Assembly (NCBI GenBank): GCA_009103225.1
Contig: RHPI01002619.1
Coordinates: 54,212-118,211, forward strand
Reading direction: 5' to 3'
DNA length: 64,000 bases
Source: Chlorokybus atmophyticus
Lineage: Eukaryota; Plantae; Mesostigma and Chlorokybus algae
Shown here: piece after piece, positions 40,588-48,367 of the stretch
How the letters are laid out: each line of letters opens with the position of its first letter
Numbering within the stretch: the first letter of the stretch is position 1
Notes under the pieces: model-generated
Database searches by the model: none
Seen by the model: the letters and a program-made list of their open reading frames with translations, nothing else
What the model was told of the DNA's origin: nothing
Position numbers and translations under genes: made by a program

Positions 40588-41266
40588 GGATTGTCGTGTG
40601 TGTTGATGGAGTGTTACCCTTCAACAACTAGCTGTATGGATTGCAAGCGGCCAGTGCCTGCCTGTAGTGTACAGAGATTACGCCTTTTGTAAAGTCTGCC
40701 GGTGCTCGCTTGTGCTATGCTGGGTTAGATCACCATTGCCAAGCCCAGCACTAGCAATTGCGAGGATCACATAGTAACGTGTGCAACACAACCGAGATAC
40801 CGCTGTTCACGCAAGCTCAGCCACCACAAAAGCCATGAAACATTGCAATGGGAACATTAAAAGGGCTTGTGTTCAACAAACGATTTGTTGCAACATACTG
40901 ATTTTTCCAATTCTACCAATTGGGGTGGGCAATATGTTGCGCGCGCGCACCGAGCACATTGCAATTGCATGGCACGCACCATGCACTCAATCAATCCTGA
41001 CACGCGAGATGCATACACGATTGGTATAAGATGAATTTGGTGTTAAGAGTTGAGCACTTAGTTGCTGGTTGGACCCGTGTAATTGTCATCATCTACACAA
41101 TGCAGTGTACAGCAGTATACCACGCCCTGCACAAGGCTCAGCCCTGGTAAAGCTTCCAAGCCCTATGCCAAGGAGCAAATCGGGCGGTGTATACTTCGAC
41201 ATCGGACTTGCTTCAACCTCCCAGTTGCAACCAACGGAACAAGCAAGCCAACAAACCACTGCCTGG

Positions 41267-42017
41267 TCAGCCTAGTTTCAACGTGAACGGCAGCGGATCC
41301 TTCAGCGCCGTCACATGCGTCTCTCCCCACACCTGTTCCACCGTGGGCATCCTCGTTATCTCGTCGACCACCCTCATGTCCTCTTCCTTCACCACCCCAA
41401 ACACGTTGAACGCGTTGCCCCACTCGGGATGGTCCGCCACAGCGATGAAGAAGTCTGGGCCGGACCCGATCATGCACGCGTGGCCGCGCTTGACGACGGG
41501 GCCGGGCTCGTTGGGGAGATCGGGACCGGACTTGCCGGCGGGCCACATGTCGGGGACGGAAAAACCGCCTTGGACGAGGGCGTAGGGAGGACCGTAGGGT
41601 TTCTGGAAGACACACAATGCATGACGTGTTATGCACATCCCTGGTGCCAAAGAACGAGTGCACACATGCACATCCCAACGCATGCGCACCCATGTGTGCT
41701 TGCGCACGCATGCATGCACGCATACATGTACACACACGCACACCTAAGCACATGCGCACTGCACATACCTCCCATATCTTCTCTGCTCGATAGAACCTGC
41801 ATCCTGAGCCGCACTTGGACCCTTCTGCAATGCGCTTCACGAAGGCTGCTGAAGTTGGCGCCAGCTCCGGCTGAAGCTGCACGTTGAAATGAAAGGCACA
41901 TGAGGGGCTTTGTTGTTGCAGCACAGACAATATCAAATGACACACAGCAAACTCGCATACCTCGATAGGGATGTCGCCAAGATGAGTCCCGATCACAACC
42001 ATCACCTGAGCCTGCAT
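41267..42017 (-). CDS. Cyclophilin-like domain protein (plant At4g17070-like family, from recall); either a separate gene or 3' exons of the HPAT gene upstream
   Basis: Three phase-0 exons: AQVMVVIGTHLGDIPIE|LQPELAPTSAAFVKRIAEGSKCGSGCRFYRAEKIWE|KPYGPPYALVQG...GSGPDFFIAVADHPEWGNAFNVFGVV...LKLG-stop. Confidence 0.75.
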
Positions 42018-42148
42018 AGATACGGGTTTCAGTCAAGTTCGTCCTTGACTCATAACTGAGAATGCAACATTTGTGTTTGCGCTGTCTAAGTCAAGTTGAG
42101 ACAACACCATCCCGCAAAGCATTGTTGTGTGTTTGTGAGCGACACAAG

Positions 42149-44811
42149 GTCACCGTTGCGCTTCCTGTTGTTTCCGCTGCTTGGCTTCGCGCTCTTCTCG
42201 CTCCCGCTTCTCCACCTCCACACGAGTAGCACGCGCCACGTCGCCCGGCTCACTCGCCTGCAGCAGTCAACAACCCAACATGTTAATATCCACCAACATG
42301 TTATTCACCAACACAACATCCCAACATATACTTCTGCAACAACATACCTGGAAGGCTGCTTCAAACGTGGTGAAACCCTTCGGCAGGCCGTTATTCTCCG
42401 CGTTGATAATGTCCACCGCTTCGTTGAATATCGAAGCCTCAAGCCTCAAGATATCCATCAAGTCCTGTCAACAAACCATGTGCATTAGCTGAAAAAACAA
42501 TACAGTGAGTCTAGTATAAACCAGAGGCCACACGCACGTACTTTTTTGACGGGTTCGTGCCGAAACCATTCTTGCAAGAAATATGTCTCGGGCTGCCATT
42601 CTGGTAATTCGGGTATCCTTCCCAGCTTGAAATTGGTGTTGTGGTACTCACCCTTCATGTACGAGCGCTTGTCGAAAGTCCATATCTGCAACAAAGTGAG
42701 GTCAACAGACGGCGATGGTAGGCAAAATGAAAGCCAAGGGAAATCATATCACAGTGTCTGTACACAGCCAATGTGATATGCCTTGATTGACTCCTTGTTC
42801 TGCAAGCGCACCACCTCACGCTTTCGCAACCACACATGGGTGCGCGCATGCACGCTCCCATGCACACATCTGCGCTTACGCATGCGCGCATGCATGCGCG
42901 CGCACATGCACACGCTGATACGCAACTACATAAATGCGCGTGCGCGTGCACACAAACACAAAGAACAGCAGACACTTCTGTGATTCTGCGCGTGCGCACG
43001 CACATGCACGCATGCACATCTGGCTCCACGTCACAACTAGTCACCCTTCTCACCATAGTGTACTCGTATTTATCAGCGGGCCCGCTCCTCGTATACATCT
43101 CCGTCCCCCACGTATAATGCATCATAGCCGCCTCCCCCGTTCTCCTATCCGCCGGCGGCTGCACCATCAAGGTATTATCGGGTACCGTCGTGAGGTCCAG
43201 ACTCACGCGTGCCTTGGCGCACGCGATCGAGAAGGCGTACATCTCGCGCACCCAACCGAGCGTCTCCACGGCCTCGGGGTCGCGCTCCATCTTGGCGACG
43301 ACGAGCTCCCACTCGGCGACCTGGCAACGTTGTGTGCATGTGTTGGTGATGAATGTGTGCGTGCATGCCTGTATACGTGCGTGTGAGTATATGAGCGGAC
43401 ATTTGTGACGGTACTATTACAATTGTGCACACCCTGCTTCCCTATGTGCGTGTGCACACATAGGGAAGCAGGGTGTGCACACTTGTGGTACCCAGACACC
43501 TTACCTAGACATCTTATCACAGGTGTATGCCTGATGCCAGACGCATACAGTGCCACCACACACACAAGCACTCCTCATACCACGCGTTTCATGTCGTCGC
43601 TGCGCATGAGTATGGGTGCATTGCCGGTGGCCGGGATGTCCGACACGGGGCCGAGCTCTGGCGGGTACAACCGCTCGAGGACTTGCTTCAGCGCGGGATT
43701 GCGCGGCGCGATGTACCTGAGGATGGGTCGATAAATACACACATACACACATTCACCGGCATGTGCGTGCACAAGTGAGATAAGAGTCGTACCCGAAGGG
43801 GAAGCCTATGCCCTGGCCGGGCTGGAGGCTGGGGGGCGGAATGGCTTTCATGAGCAAGTAGTCTGTCTCTCCGAGCAGGATGTGCTCTGCAGGAGACAGA
43901 AGGTCACGCAATCAACAACACCACCACCAACAACTATAACAACAACAACCATCGCACCAACAACGACAACCATCAGCAACCATCAACAACCATCGCAGCA
44001 ACAACAACAACGACCATTCAAAGAACATGCAATCCTAGGACATGCTCTCACGCACACAGATGTACTCTCATACGCACGTGCTCACAGTCATGCACGTGCA
44101 CTCTCACCGCACTGCTTCGCGTCCTCCGTCTCCATCCACTCCCGCAGCGCCGCCGACCTGTCCGCCACGGGGTAGCTGCACCACAGGTCGCAGTCGGGGT
44201 GCTTCGTATCAAACCGAGCAGTGGGCACCTCGAATACAAGGTCGTCGGGAGTCCTGAGGAGGAGAAGTTGTGGTTAATGTAGTTATTGTTGTTGTGGTTG
44301 TGGTTGTGATTGTGGTTGTTGCTGTTGCTGTTGTTGTTGTTGTTGTTATGCTTCCTGCTCTTGCTCTTGTCCTTGTTCTTGCTCTTGCTGCTTTTGTATG
44401 TCCTTGTTGTTGTATTGTACAGAATACAAGTAACTGACAAACTACTCACATGCGGTGGAGTACTCGTGTGAATGCGTGTAGTCCACTAGAGGGTTCGTTC
44501 TTGTGTTTGAGGAAGGTTTGGTATAGGACGCGGGTCTGCCAGTTCATGTACGGGCTGCCGTTGCTCGTGATCACAAAGTGGATGCCGGGATGCTTGCCAC
44601 TGGAAGCCTGTGGTGGATGTGGTGTAATGGTGAATGTGTGCATGCAATGCATACGAAACAAGGTGAGTAAACGTCTGTAGTGATTTGTAGTGTGTGTTGC
44701 ATGTCCGGCTTCACGATTTGCATTGCGCTGTATCCAACCTTGGTTGTTTGTTGTTCTTGTCGTTGCTGCTCTTCTTTTGCTCGTTGACCTTCTTGTTGCT
44801 GTTGTTGTTGC

Positions 44812-44851
<40 letters not shown>

Positions 44852-45125
44852 TGCGCTCATCAACTACAACTGCAACCTTCTCAGCAACCTTCGCTACTCC
44901 ACTGCCAACGTCGCCAGTCTCAACGATACCACCACCATGTCCATCACCTCCTCCTCCTCCTCCACCACCTCCTCCGCCGCCGCCGCCGCCGTTAGGCAAG
45001 TGTACTATCGACGCCCACGTGGACAGCAGCAGCACCCCGACAAACCCGCCGAGGAAACCGAACCCCACGAACGCCGCGATTGCGGCTGGGGAAGGCCCGC
45101 GAGGGCGCCGACCACCGCGCCTCAT
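42149..45125 (-). CDS. HPAT: Hydroxyproline O-arabinosyltransferase (GT95/HPAT-like), type II membrane, copy 1
   Basis: N-terminal TM and Gly/Gln-rich stem, then ITSNGSPYMNWQTRVLYQTF, FTRVLHR, YPVADRSAAL, ETDYLLMK, GFPFGY, GNAPILM, LGWVREMYAFSIACA, MVQPPAD, MHYTWG and WTFDKRSY. Confidence 0.88.
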
Positions 45126-45599
45126 CGCGACGACAGCACCACCACCGACGACGACGAGGAGGAGGAGGAGGATGACCCCGGCAATGCCGCCGCCTGGCTG
45201 AGGGTAATATTCCGTGTCAAACAGTTACACTTTGGGCCCAAGCAAAGGAAGTTCCTCAAACTACTTTCCTAGCGGCTTCCCGGTTTGAACCTCCGTAACA
45301 ACTTCCTACGTAAGGCTTCCGTTTGGTTGCCCTGATTAACAAACAACTTCCGTGTGATCGCAGGCTTTGACAGCACTCAGCGGCATTGCTTTGCTAGCGG
45401 CGGTGGCGGTGTTGGGGTTGTTGTCGTTGCTGGGATGATGAGGGGGGTTGTCGAGCACAGGATGAGAGCGCTTGCTGACAGCTGAAAAATGGCTGCCTGC
45501 CTGCCTGCCTGCCTGCCTGATGAGGTCAGGAGGAGCGCGGGAGACGTGTCCTCCTCCTTGAGGTGAGAGAGAGTCTGGTAGGCCTGCTAGGTTGCCGCC

Positions 45600-48367
45600 A
45601 TGAGGCGGGGCGGCAGCGGCGGTGGTGGAGGTATGGGTGGCATGGGCGGCATGGGCGGTGGTACGGGTGGTGGCATGCGTGGACAGGGCATGAGCACCAC
45701 CGCCATACTCGCCTTTGCAGCGATAGGCTTCCTGGGCGGCTTCCTCATTACACACATGCTGTCCACCTGGCTGTCAGTCATGCAGGTTTGAACATGCGCA
45801 TTACTGTTGAGGACTTATATTCTTATTGTTTATTATTGTTAACGTACTATTTGCATAATTTTATTGCACTGCGTGCGCAAAATTGCACAATGACGCATAC
45901 ATGCATCAAGACACAACACGCTACTGTGTGTGTCACGCAGTTGAGTCACCAGCACACCGCCACCAGAGACTACGCCATGCCTACGGACCTAATCACAAAT
46001 AACAACAACAATGATGCCGACGACGATGACTCCATGCAAGACCCCCTCGACGACGACTTGGACGAGTACACCATCCACGAAGACCACACCCTCACCCCTG
46101 ACTCAGCTCACTCCCAACATGAAGAGGACGACACTACTTCTGGAACCATCTCTCAAAGCAGTAACCGGTTACCGGGCATCCACTTCGTCATCACGAGCAA
46201 CGGCAACACCTACATGAACTGGCAGACCCGCGTGCTGTACCAGACGTTCTTGAAACACAAGGGGGCGAAGGGGTCGGCGCTGGCAGCGTTCACCAGAGTG
46301 CTGCATAGAATGTGAGTGAGAGTGTGGGGGTGCGTGTGTGAGTGGGTGGGGGTGGGGGTGAGTGTAGGTGTGGGTGCGCACGTGCGTGTGTATGTGGGTG
46401 TGCATGTGGGCGTGCATGTAGGCGTGCACGTGTGCGAGCGCGTGCGCGTGCGTCTGTTTGCATGCATGTATGTGTGTGTGTGTGTTGACGTCGTCAGTAT
46501 GTCGTGTCTGTAGGACGGATGACGAGCTCATGCACGAGGTTCCCACCTCGCGGTTCGACCCGAAGCATCCGGCGTGCGACGTGTGGTGCAACTACCCTGT
46601 CGCCGATCGGTCCGGAGCCTTGCGGCAGTGGCTCGAGACGGAGGACGCAAAGCAATGCGGTGCGTGCGCGTGTGCATGTGTGCATACGGTTGTGTGCAAG
46701 TGTTCGTGCGTGCGAGGGCGTACGTGTGCTTGCATATGTGCACGCACGTGCGAATGTGTGTGCGCGTGTGCGCGTGAGCATGTATCTTTTGTATGTGTGC
46801 ATGTGCGTGTGCGCGTGCGCGTGCGTGTGCGCGTGCGTGTGCGCGTGCGTGTGCGTGTGCGGGTGCGGGTGCGGGTGCGTGTGCGCGCAACTGTGTGCAC
46901 ACATGTGCGTGTTCGTATGCAAGTGTGCGTGTTGACAGTCGCACTGTGTGTGCTTCCGGGTAATAATGAGTGCTTTGTCTCACTGTTTGCATGTCCAAAA
47001 CAGAGTACATCCTGCTGGGAGAGACGGACTACCTGTTGGTTAAGCCTTTAGCCCAGCCGAACCTGGCACGCGGAGAAGGCATGGGTTTCCCTTTCGGGTT
47101 GGTATAAGTGTGTATGTGTGTGTGCGTGCGGTGATGCATCATGTGTGGGACCCGCACACAACCCACACAACACCTTTGGACAGGTACATCATACCAACAT
47201 ATCCGACAATCAAAGAGCCCATGGAGAGACTGTACCCGCCCGAGCTCGGCCCACTATCGGACATTCCCAACACGGGGAATGCGCCCGTCATGATGCGCGC
47301 GGATGACATGACTCAAGTGGTGAGCACATTTTAGCAACATGCTTGGTGTATCTAAGCTGTGTGGTTGTTGCATGCTGTTGATCAGAATGTGTTTTGGTTT
47401 TGAAAGGTTCAACTGTGGGAGCAAGTTGTGGATGTGATGGAGGCCGACGCAGAAGCCGTTGAGAAGCTAGGTTGGGTACGTGCATTATATAAAATCAGAG
47501 GGATGCCACAGCTGTTTGAGCACATGTGTCTGATTGTGTTTGCGTGTGCGTGTCTGTGCACAGGTGCGTGAGATGTACGCCTTCTCCATCGCCTGCGCCA
47601 AAGCCCACGTACGCATGGACCTTCCTCCCCCTCCCAACAACGTCTTCATGGTCCAGCCTCCGATGGACCGTTCCATGGGCAAGGCGGCGATGATGCACTA
47701 CACGTGGGGCACGGAGATGTACACGAAGCAGGTGAAAGACGGCAAAGAGGACTACACCATGGTGTGGACGTACGACAAGAGGACTTACATGGGAGGGCAG
47801 TATCATCAGGCAACCTTTAGGCTGGATCGCATACCCGAGCTGCCCGAATGGGAACCCAATAAGTATTTCCTGCAGGAGTGGTTCAAGCGGGAAGAGGTCA
47901 CAAAGGTACATGTTGTGCGGAGACATGCAGTTGTGTGTGCGCATGAGCGTGCATGTGTGCGTGTGTTCTAATGCAGTTGTATTGTGCATGCAGGAATTGA
48001 TGGACATCCTGCGCCTTGAGGCGAAGGTTTTCAACGAGGCGATTGACAGCATCAATAACAAGAACAACGGGCTGCCGCAGGGTTTCACCTCAGTTGAAGC
48101 AGCTGTCAAGGTGCTGTGTAAATGTATAGAATTCAAGGATTGTGGCATGCATGTGTGTACGTGCGTGCACATGTTCGCGTGTGCTTGTGTCCGCATGCTC
48201 GCATGAATGCACGTGTGTCCATGCGCGCATGTGTGCGTGCGTGTGTGTAACCACACTGTTTGCTGCAGGCAGGCGAGCCTGGCGAGCAAGCAAAGCAGGC
48301 CAGGCAACGAGTTGAGCAGCTGGAACGGGAGAAAGCCGAGCGCAAGAAGAAAGCTGAGGGGAGGTAA
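45600..48367 (+). CDS. HPAT: Hydroxyproline O-arabinosyltransferase (GT95/HPAT-like), copy 2, head-to-head with copy 1
   Basis: Same motifs and exon structure: ITSNGNTYMNWQTRVLYQTF, VREMYAFSIACAK, MVQPPMD, MHYTWGTE, WTYDKRTY. The last exon AGEPGEQ...KAEGR ends in a stop at 48367. Confidence 0.88.

Follow-up and report, generated by a model that had tools for sequence, protein, structure and literature searches.

The organisation of two adjacent genes was examined in a 64,000 nucleotide stretch of DNA from the streptophyte alga Chlorokybus atmophyticus (contig RHPI01002619.1 of assembly GCA_009103225.1, positions 54,212 to 118,211 of the forward strand), which is referred to below as the window and in which position 1 is the first letter. 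The first gene encodes a predicted hydroxyproline O-arabinosyltransferase (HPAT) and is followed by three exons, C1 to C3, that encode a cyclophilin-like domain (CLD), all of these exons being colinear on the minus strand. A preliminary description of this DNA had noted that the CLD exons begin about 130 bp past the HPAT stop on the same strand, which agrees with the ATG at 42017 lying 132 nt after that stop, and had proposed that skipping of the short last HPAT exon would fuse the two genes into a Golgi-luminal chimera. The analysis revealed that the two genes are joined by splicing into one messenger RNA (mRNA), in which they form two separate open reading frames (ORFs). The coordinates of the features are given in Table 1.

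The first reading frame, ORF1, is 520 amino acids long. The frame was followed using a local exon-by-exon script, and was open through nine exons from the ATG at 45125, with 22 ATG triplets along its length. The start codon lies in the context GCGAUGA, giving a purine at position -3. Exon 1 was read by eye and begins with the short basic tail MRRGGRRPRGPSP, followed by a hydrophobic stretch of approximately 25 residues and then by a stem rich in Gly and Gln. Pfam searches, made exon by exon, gave matches to PF23452 for exon 2 (positions 2-45, 3e-08), exon 5 (positions 128-171, 6e-04) and exon 6 (positions 173-252, 1.9e-14, with 54 bits against a cutoff of 23.9), and because of these three matches ORF1 is identified as a predicted HPAT. 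It is further predicted to be a type II membrane protein of the GT95 family, with a short N-terminal tail and one signal anchor. In the genomic sequence the HPAT frame ends at a TGA codon at 42152-42150, directly after the ...EAQR of exon 9; the preliminary description had recognised this stop and placed it at ~42149, its coordinates being good to 1-3 bases.

The second reading frame, ORF2, comprises 161 amino acids and ends with the TGA at 41269-41267. When exon C3 alone was searched with HMMER against 1.84 billion representatives, 279 relatives were obtained, while a word-index search found one relative only, owing to its limits. The named relatives are land-plant proteins described as "like AT4G17070", prasinophyte proteins described as "cyclophilin-like domain containing", one Mesotaenium protein and one Thecamonas protein. 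Searched as a single exon, C3 scored 19.5 bits against Pfam PF00160, which is below the cutoff of 21.7, and gave 0.2 against the PDB. A profile built from 16 family members matched solved cyclophilins over the whole domain, with E values of 3e-07 to 1e-05, and the CLD relatives pass PF00160, so that a cyclophilin fold is very likely for ORF2. ORF2 is assigned by its sequence to the AT4G17070-like family of CLD proteins and is a predicted proline-isomerase-like protein. All of the invariant columns of the family alignment are present (FYRAE, GPPYALxQG, GPDFFI, HxEWG and WG.T.VT.L), as is the conserved Cys pair, and ORF2 matches a Malvaceae representative (P0017) with an E value of 1e-22 and shares 57-67% identity with distant marine algal members. 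As ORF2 is intact over three exons, at this level of identity and with the invariant residues kept, it is likely to be under constraint and not a relic. The AT4G17070-like family itself appears to be functionally uncharacterised, AT4G17070 being mentioned in only one of the papers searched.

Although ORF2 matches the family over the whole domain, there is a marked difference at the N-terminus. A type II anchor or signal peptide, accompanied by an ShKT or PAN_4 module, is the usual N-terminus of the members and takes up profile positions 1-116, and 44 of the 72 representatives that have an N-terminal extension carry a strongly hydrophobic segment. ORF2 begins at profile position 117, at the first beta-strand of the domain, and lacks a signal or anchor module. 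The N-terminal portions of 91 family members were used as tblastn queries to look through the 64-kb window for a hidden CLD exon encoding a signal, ShKT or PAN segment, and none was found. The absence of a signal anchor from the CLD exons was thus correctly described beforehand: the three exons encode a complete domain and no targeting module. ORF2 therefore has the appearance of a headless copy of a secretory-pathway family, from which the N-terminal module has been lost.

The relatives were also searched for fusions between GT95 and cyclophilin-like domains, which the preliminary description had recommended looking for in algal proteomes. No HPAT-CLD fusion was present among the best 150 of the 279 relatives, judged by length and match position, or among ten of the longest, judged by Pfam. 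These ten contained PAN_4, RRM or CLD only, the longer ones combining PAN_4 with CLD or RRM with CLD. In four genomic contexts of CLD relatives no neighbouring HPAT was found. Among the relatives listed, the closest by identity (67%) was P0004, from IMG sample 3300017048. The contig of this relative (L002, 1-800) is scaffolded with an N gap, and the 167 amino acid protein called on it is an artefact of an ShKT-CLD protein having been split at the gap.

The transcripts of the locus were examined using RNA-derived contigs, X1, X2 and X3, from three runs of one organism in two studies, the first an older multi-species study and the second a study from 2021 in which several diverged samples all bear the same organism name. 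Between 10 and 45% of the words of the stretch were present in the runs, and since this is the share that spliced RNA would give, the runs were taken as RNA. The evidence consists of assembled contigs, in which rare variants are dropped and transcript starts are not visible. The X1 contig of 1835 nt and the X2 contig of 2004 nt both run unbroken from HPAT exon 2 through exons 3-9 into C1, C2 and C3 and then into approximately 250 nt of 3' untranslated region (UTR). All 11 introns are missing from both contigs, the eleven gaps being GT..AG in every case, which indicates that the contigs represent complementary DNA (cDNA). The 3' UTR at 41016-41266 contains neither TGTAA nor AATAAA.

The joint between the two genes, 42154/42011, was present in X1, X2 and the diverged X3, and has GT..AG ends and an ambiguity of 2 nt only. 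By the joint coordinates the small exon has room for 50 letters and no more, which excludes hidden extra letters at the joint. On the acceptor side the preliminary description was accurate: the sequence ATGCAG/GCTCAG was found, with its ATG at 42017-42015 and the exon start at 42011, in phase 0 with respect to the CLD frame, and the contigs join at this position, so that splicing does use the proposed acceptor. The donor differs from the expected one. A joint from ~42347 to ~42011, which would skip exon 9, was absent from the joint tables of all three runs, whose contigs drop rare variants; the donor actually used is at 42154, and the exon encoding ASEPG..EAQR is kept. Contigs that span a junction between the genes do therefore exist, though at 42154/42011. 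The HPAT and CLD exons are coupled, as had been suggested, in that the contigs join them by splicing and they are not independent units, but the observed joint gives no fusion protein.

The inter-cistronic intron was found in unspliced form in X3 only. In this run the spliced arm had a depth of 117 and the unspliced arm a depth of 36, and the end points of the unspliced arm, at 42182 and 41983, fit a bubble formed by spliced and unspliced copies. The X1 and X2 contigs gave no cover of the 142-nt intron and no alternative HPAT 3' end, and the depths of the bins around the intron were wholly explained by exon bases. X3 represents a diverged strain or cryptic species, its other pieces being 95-99% identical. 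Within the inter-cistronic intron it has 122 letters where the window has 104 (42023-42128), with up to 3 changes in 42011-42023, the segment that holds the ATG at 42017. The 28 nt on the C1 side of the joint are identical in X3, and the exon flanks are kept. The intron appears from this comparison to evolve freely while the joint and the UGAUG that it creates are kept.

Table 1. Features of the HPAT/CLD transcription unit, in window coordinates and in the order of transcription.
Feature	Positions	Strand	Basis
5' UTR of the HPAT/CLD mRNA (minimum extent), ATG-free	45126..45203	-	X1 contig spanning 44997-45203
HPAT exon 1: start ATG 45125-45123, predicted signal anchor AAIAAFVGFGFLGGFVGVLLLSTWA, poly-Gly and poly-Gln stem	44739..45125	-	contig joint 44738 to 44608
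HPAT exons 2-8: 44607-44450, 44253-44108, 43886-43793, 43716-43581, 43320-43054, 42685-42542, 42464-42348	42348..44607	-	X1 and X2 contig joints, GT..AG introns, open frame
HPAT exon 9: 104 nt without an ATG, encodes the charged tail ASEPG...EAQ(R) at the C-terminus, kept in the mRNA	42154..42257	-	contigs and paralog homology
Inter-cistronic intron: 142 nt, donor CG/GTGACC, acceptor TATGCAG/G, five ATGs including 42017	42012..42153	-	contig joint in X1, X2 and X3
Exon C1: first 10 nt end the HPAT ORF (R-L-R-stop); from 42002 encodes MVVIGTHLGDIPIE, first CLD beta-strand	41961..42011	-	family profile positions 117-130
UGAUG: HPAT stop 42004-42002 overlapping CLD AUG 42002-42000, A shared	42000..42004	-	spliced frame; X3 identical
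Exon C2: LQPELAP...CGSGCRFYRAEKIWE	41769..41876	-	family profile positions 132-166, E 1e-08
Exon C3: up to the stop TGA 41269-41267	41267..41602	-	family profile positions 178-279, E 9e-52
3' UTR: the only 3' end seen for HPAT-containing contigs	41016..41266	-	X2 reaches 41016, X1 reaches 41182

The length of exon 9 determines how the two frames meet. Because this exon has 104 nt, two bases are carried into C1 and the HPAT frame enters C1 shifted by one base, reading CGG CTC AGG TGA and stopping after Arg-Leu-Arg. In the spliced mRNA the HPAT protein consequently gains Leu-Arg relative to the genomic reading and ends ...EAQRLR, with the UGA at 42004-42002. The CLD frame lies one base (-1) off that of HPAT, and after splicing the AUG at 42002-42000 is the first that it contains, in the context CAGGUGAUGG, with G at both -3 and +4. 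The dominant mRNA thus contains two separate ORFs joined out of frame by the 104-nt exon, and does not encode a chimera. The donor GT itself straddles two codons, its G closing the final Arg codon and its T opening the HPAT stop codon TGA.

Other ways of reading the junction were considered and rejected. The ATG at 42017, which the preliminary description had regarded as a possible start of an independent CLD, lies in the spliced-out intron, where four other ATGs and an in-frame stop (42035-42033) come before it, and it stands in a weak context. A fusion by -1 frameshifting would depend on a slippery heptamer, of which the sole example, GGGUUUC, is in exon 8; its -1 frame meets a TGA at 42252-42250, and there is no such heptamer in exon 9. 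A +1 shift at the UGA, of the antizyme kind, could not reach the CLD, as the CLD frame is -1 to that of HPAT. An alternative acceptor of the NAGNAG type would not rescue a fusion either, the second AG being 6 nt downstream and in the same frame.

The architecture of the mRNA, the reading frames and the family memberships are established by these data. We consider it slightly more probable than not that the locus gives one mature spliced mRNA with two separate ORFs, HPAT (520 amino acids) and then the signal-less CLD (161 amino acids), of which the CLD would be made by reinitiation. In this mechanism the 142-nt intron, starting inside the HPAT stop codon, would remove the whole spacer and its five ATGs, and splicing would set the strong-context AUG of the CLD on the HPAT stop as UGAUG. 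Ribosomes that have completed HPAT would then start again on the AUG that overlaps its stop (termination-coupled reinitiation), yielding small amounts of free CLD, probably in the cytosol. With the spacer and five AUGs removed and a strong AUG lying on the stop, the layout is that expected for termination-coupled reinitiation. Leaky scanning is unlikely because ORF1 is 520 codons long with 22 AUG triplets; the signature of that mechanism, a short ORF1 with a weak start and few AUGs before ORF2, is not seen at this locus. Intron-free contigs, as opposed to single-molecule reads, span the two complete ORFs in two studies. By the exon-junction model as usually understood, a junction downstream of the stop exposes an mRNA to nonsense-mediated decay (NMD). 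In the spliced HPAT/CLD mRNA there are two exon junctions downstream of the ORF1 stop, and the one 149 nt after it would make the mRNA open to NMD if ribosomes did not pass through ORF2 too. The mRNA is well represented all the same, and this hints indirectly at translation of ORF2.

Several considerations weigh against reinitiation on a bicistronic mRNA. Contigs cannot prove that single molecules carry both ORFs, nor do they reveal transcript starts, and the translation of ORF2 is a step that we infer. Reinitiation after long ORFs is normally inefficient. Secretory proteins are the norm in the CLD family and the conserved Cys pair is retained in ORF2, so that a cytosolic product lacking a signal would be biologically odd and would be easier to understand as part of a fusion with HPAT. 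In the published studies leaky scanning past short ORF1s with few AUGs is preferred, and reinitiation is disfavoured as the general mechanism (PMC7896298, PMC11291117). That a UGAUG built by splicing after a 520-codon ORF would lead to reinitiation on a signal-less CLD, or would take part in switching with an exon-9-skipped, Golgi-anchored chimera, is a tentative proposal which we doubt more than we believe.

Other explanations of the same data were also considered. The CLD could have an mRNA of its own that starts in or just upstream of exon 9 and uses this exon as an AUG-free 5' UTR, the assembler having merged it with the overlapping HPAT transcript. Contigs hide transcript starts, so a two-gene contig is no proof of a single transcript, and as exon 9 is ATG-free over its 104 nt the AUG at 42002 would be the first and would have a strong context. 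An ATG-free run of this length is, however, expected by chance in about 1 of 5 cases, and X1 and X2 show no separate HPAT 3' end past the genomic stop, though an assembler can clip short tips; we regard two overlapping units as unlikely. The fusion first proposed for the locus could still exist as a minor isoform, in which 42348 is joined to 42011 in frame and exon 9 is skipped to give a Golgi-anchored HPAT-CLD chimera, while the major mRNA serves HPAT alone. Its phase arithmetic is sound: the penultimate HPAT exon ends FEAAFQ in phase 0 at 42348, followed by GTATGT (42347-42342), so that both ends of the skip are in phase 0 and removal of the 104-nt exon would be in frame, and the acceptor that it would use, at the start of C1, coincides exactly with the domain boundary. 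The best argument for this isoform is that the CLD belongs to a secretory family and has no signal of its own within 64 kb, so that HPAT would supply the missing anchor; it is the only form that would take the CLD, with its conserved Cys pair, to the lumen. Against this, X1 and X2 pass unbranched from exon 8 through exon 9 into C1, the 42348/42011 joint is missing from three runs, the relatives examined contain no such fusion and the four genomic contexts no HPAT neighbour, and exon 9 is an old, conserved tail of HPAT. Such an isoform is distinctly unlikely on this evidence.

The CLD exons might alternatively be untranslated, forming a captured remnant that serves as a spliced HPAT 3' UTR and possibly lowers the level of HPAT mRNA through NMD. 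This would account for the lack of a signal module and of a promoter belonging to the CLD, and the two exon junctions downstream of the ORF1 stop are what such a role would involve. It is very unlikely all the same, as ORF2 is intact over three exons with its family-invariant residues kept and C3 matching the family at E 9e-52, a start codon of strong context is placed right on the ORF1 stop, the diverged X3 strain has a different intron but the same joint and flanks, and the mRNA is well represented in X1 and X2. Finally, the genes could be independent and the joint between exon 9 and C1 the product of a chimeric contig, given that the evidence is from contigs only and that the RNA nature of the runs was guessed. 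Two studies, with three runs between them, nevertheless show the same GT..AG joint, ambiguous by 2 nt only. X3 contains a clean spliced/unspliced bubble, and all other introns are missing from the contigs, as in cDNA. An assembly artefact is extremely improbable on these grounds.

When the locus was compared with known systems, partial likenesses were found to each of them. Termination-reinitiation is familiar from viruses, including the UAAUG of influenza B M1/BM2 and the calicivirus VP1/VP2 genes, and depends there on an upstream element complementary to 18S rRNA (TURBS). The pentanucleotide overlap of stop and start after a long ORF1 is shared with the Chlorokybus mRNA. Nuclear polycistronic mRNAs of green algae have been described by Gallaher et al. 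2021 (PMC7896298) and in a 2024 study of leaky scanning (PMC11291117). The loci catalogued there combine small ORFs a short distance apart with a weak start context for ORF1 and a low number of AUGs upstream, consistent with leaky scanning (PMC7896298, PMC11291117), and natural overlapping stop and start codons occur at some Auxenochlorella loci (PMC11291117). The HPAT/CLD mRNA resembles them in that its ORFs are out of frame with almost no spacer, and resembles those Auxenochlorella loci in its stop/start overlap. It differs in having an ORF1 of 520 amino acids with 22 AUG triplets, in coming from a streptophyte alga, and in that the overlap is made by splicing and is absent from the genome. 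The HPAT-CLD pair does not occur in the supplement text of the 2024 study (PMC11291117), and a literature search found no paper on nuclear polycistronic mRNAs in Chlorokybus.

An experimental parallel is provided by bicistronic vectors in Chlamydomonas, where translation began at an AUG placed 3-10 nt beyond the stop codon of a long ORF1, whether in or out of frame (Onishi and Pringle 2016, PMC5144980). Expression of ORF2 occurred without an internal ribosome entry site and was attributed to post-termination reinitiation (PMC5144980), a mechanism that was later disputed (PMC11291117). As in those vectors, the ORF2 AUG of Chlorokybus lies within a few nucleotides of a long ORF1; the vectors are artificial, their host is a chlorophyte, and their ORF2 expression was low and had only to suffice for drug selection. 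The locus is best read as a bicistronic mRNA of the green-algal kind, unusual in its long, AUG-rich ORF1 and its splice-made stop/start overlap.

Nuclear two-gene mRNAs are an accepted oddity of the chlorophytes, and this locus lies on the land-plant side of the green lineage. Leaky scanning cannot readily explain it, so that it lends itself naturally to testing for termination-coupled reinitiation in that lineage. If either form of the tentative proposal above holds, a streptophyte nuclear gene would have termination-coupled translation downstream of a long ORF, under the control of an intron that starts in a stop codon. One transcript would also link an enzyme for the arabinosylation of hydroxyproline-rich wall proteins with the uncharacterised AT4G17070-like family, offering a lead to the function of that family. 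Gene models at the locus would accordingly show two ORFs on one transcript, and neither two genes nor a fusion.

The plus strand carries another HPAT gene in head-to-head orientation to the first, its ATG being at 45600 and its exons extending to 48367. The two start codons, 45125 (minus) and 45600 (plus), are 474 bp apart, and the two genes probably share a bidirectional promoter. The paralog has the same exon layout as the first HPAT, with protein identities of 63-78% per exon. Its last exon, AGEPGEQAKQARQRVEQLEREKAERKKKAEGR, aligned to ASEPG...EAQR with a score of 61, compared with a mean of 18.9 for shuffled sequences, and none of 1000 shuffles reached 61. As the tail encoded by exon 9 is matched in both paralogs, the charged tail would be older than the duplication and the CLD would have been added behind one copy only; by the same token, inclusion of exon 9 would be the normal form of HPAT. 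No CLD or other recognisable ORF was found 3' of the paralogous HPAT, and there is no second CLD in the 64-kb window. The stop codon of the paralog also sits on a potential donor, GGGAG/GTAACA.

Some further features were observed within and beside the first HPAT gene. Long runs of CAG/CAA (poly-Gln) and GGN (poly-Gly) occupy 44786-44996, in the stem region of exon 1, and intron 2 is rich in CAA/CAG at 44276-44397; the transcript assemblies break at both of these repeats. Intron 5 contains an inverted repeat of 30 nt at 43419-43486, with 97% complementarity and an 8-nt loop. Rfam searches of the region for structured RNA gave sub-threshold matches only, on CA/TG-rich introns, among them matches of this inverted repeat to several microRNA-precursor models at approximately 42 bits against cutoffs of 76-100. 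The sequence may form a hairpin as a repeat, may be a small-RNA precursor, or may be no more than a palindrome, the intron being CA/TG-rich. An expressed stretch at 40700-40853 (depth 132 in X1 and 18 in X2), approximately 160-300 bp past the end of the HPAT/CLD 3' UTR, is a putative neighbouring gene.

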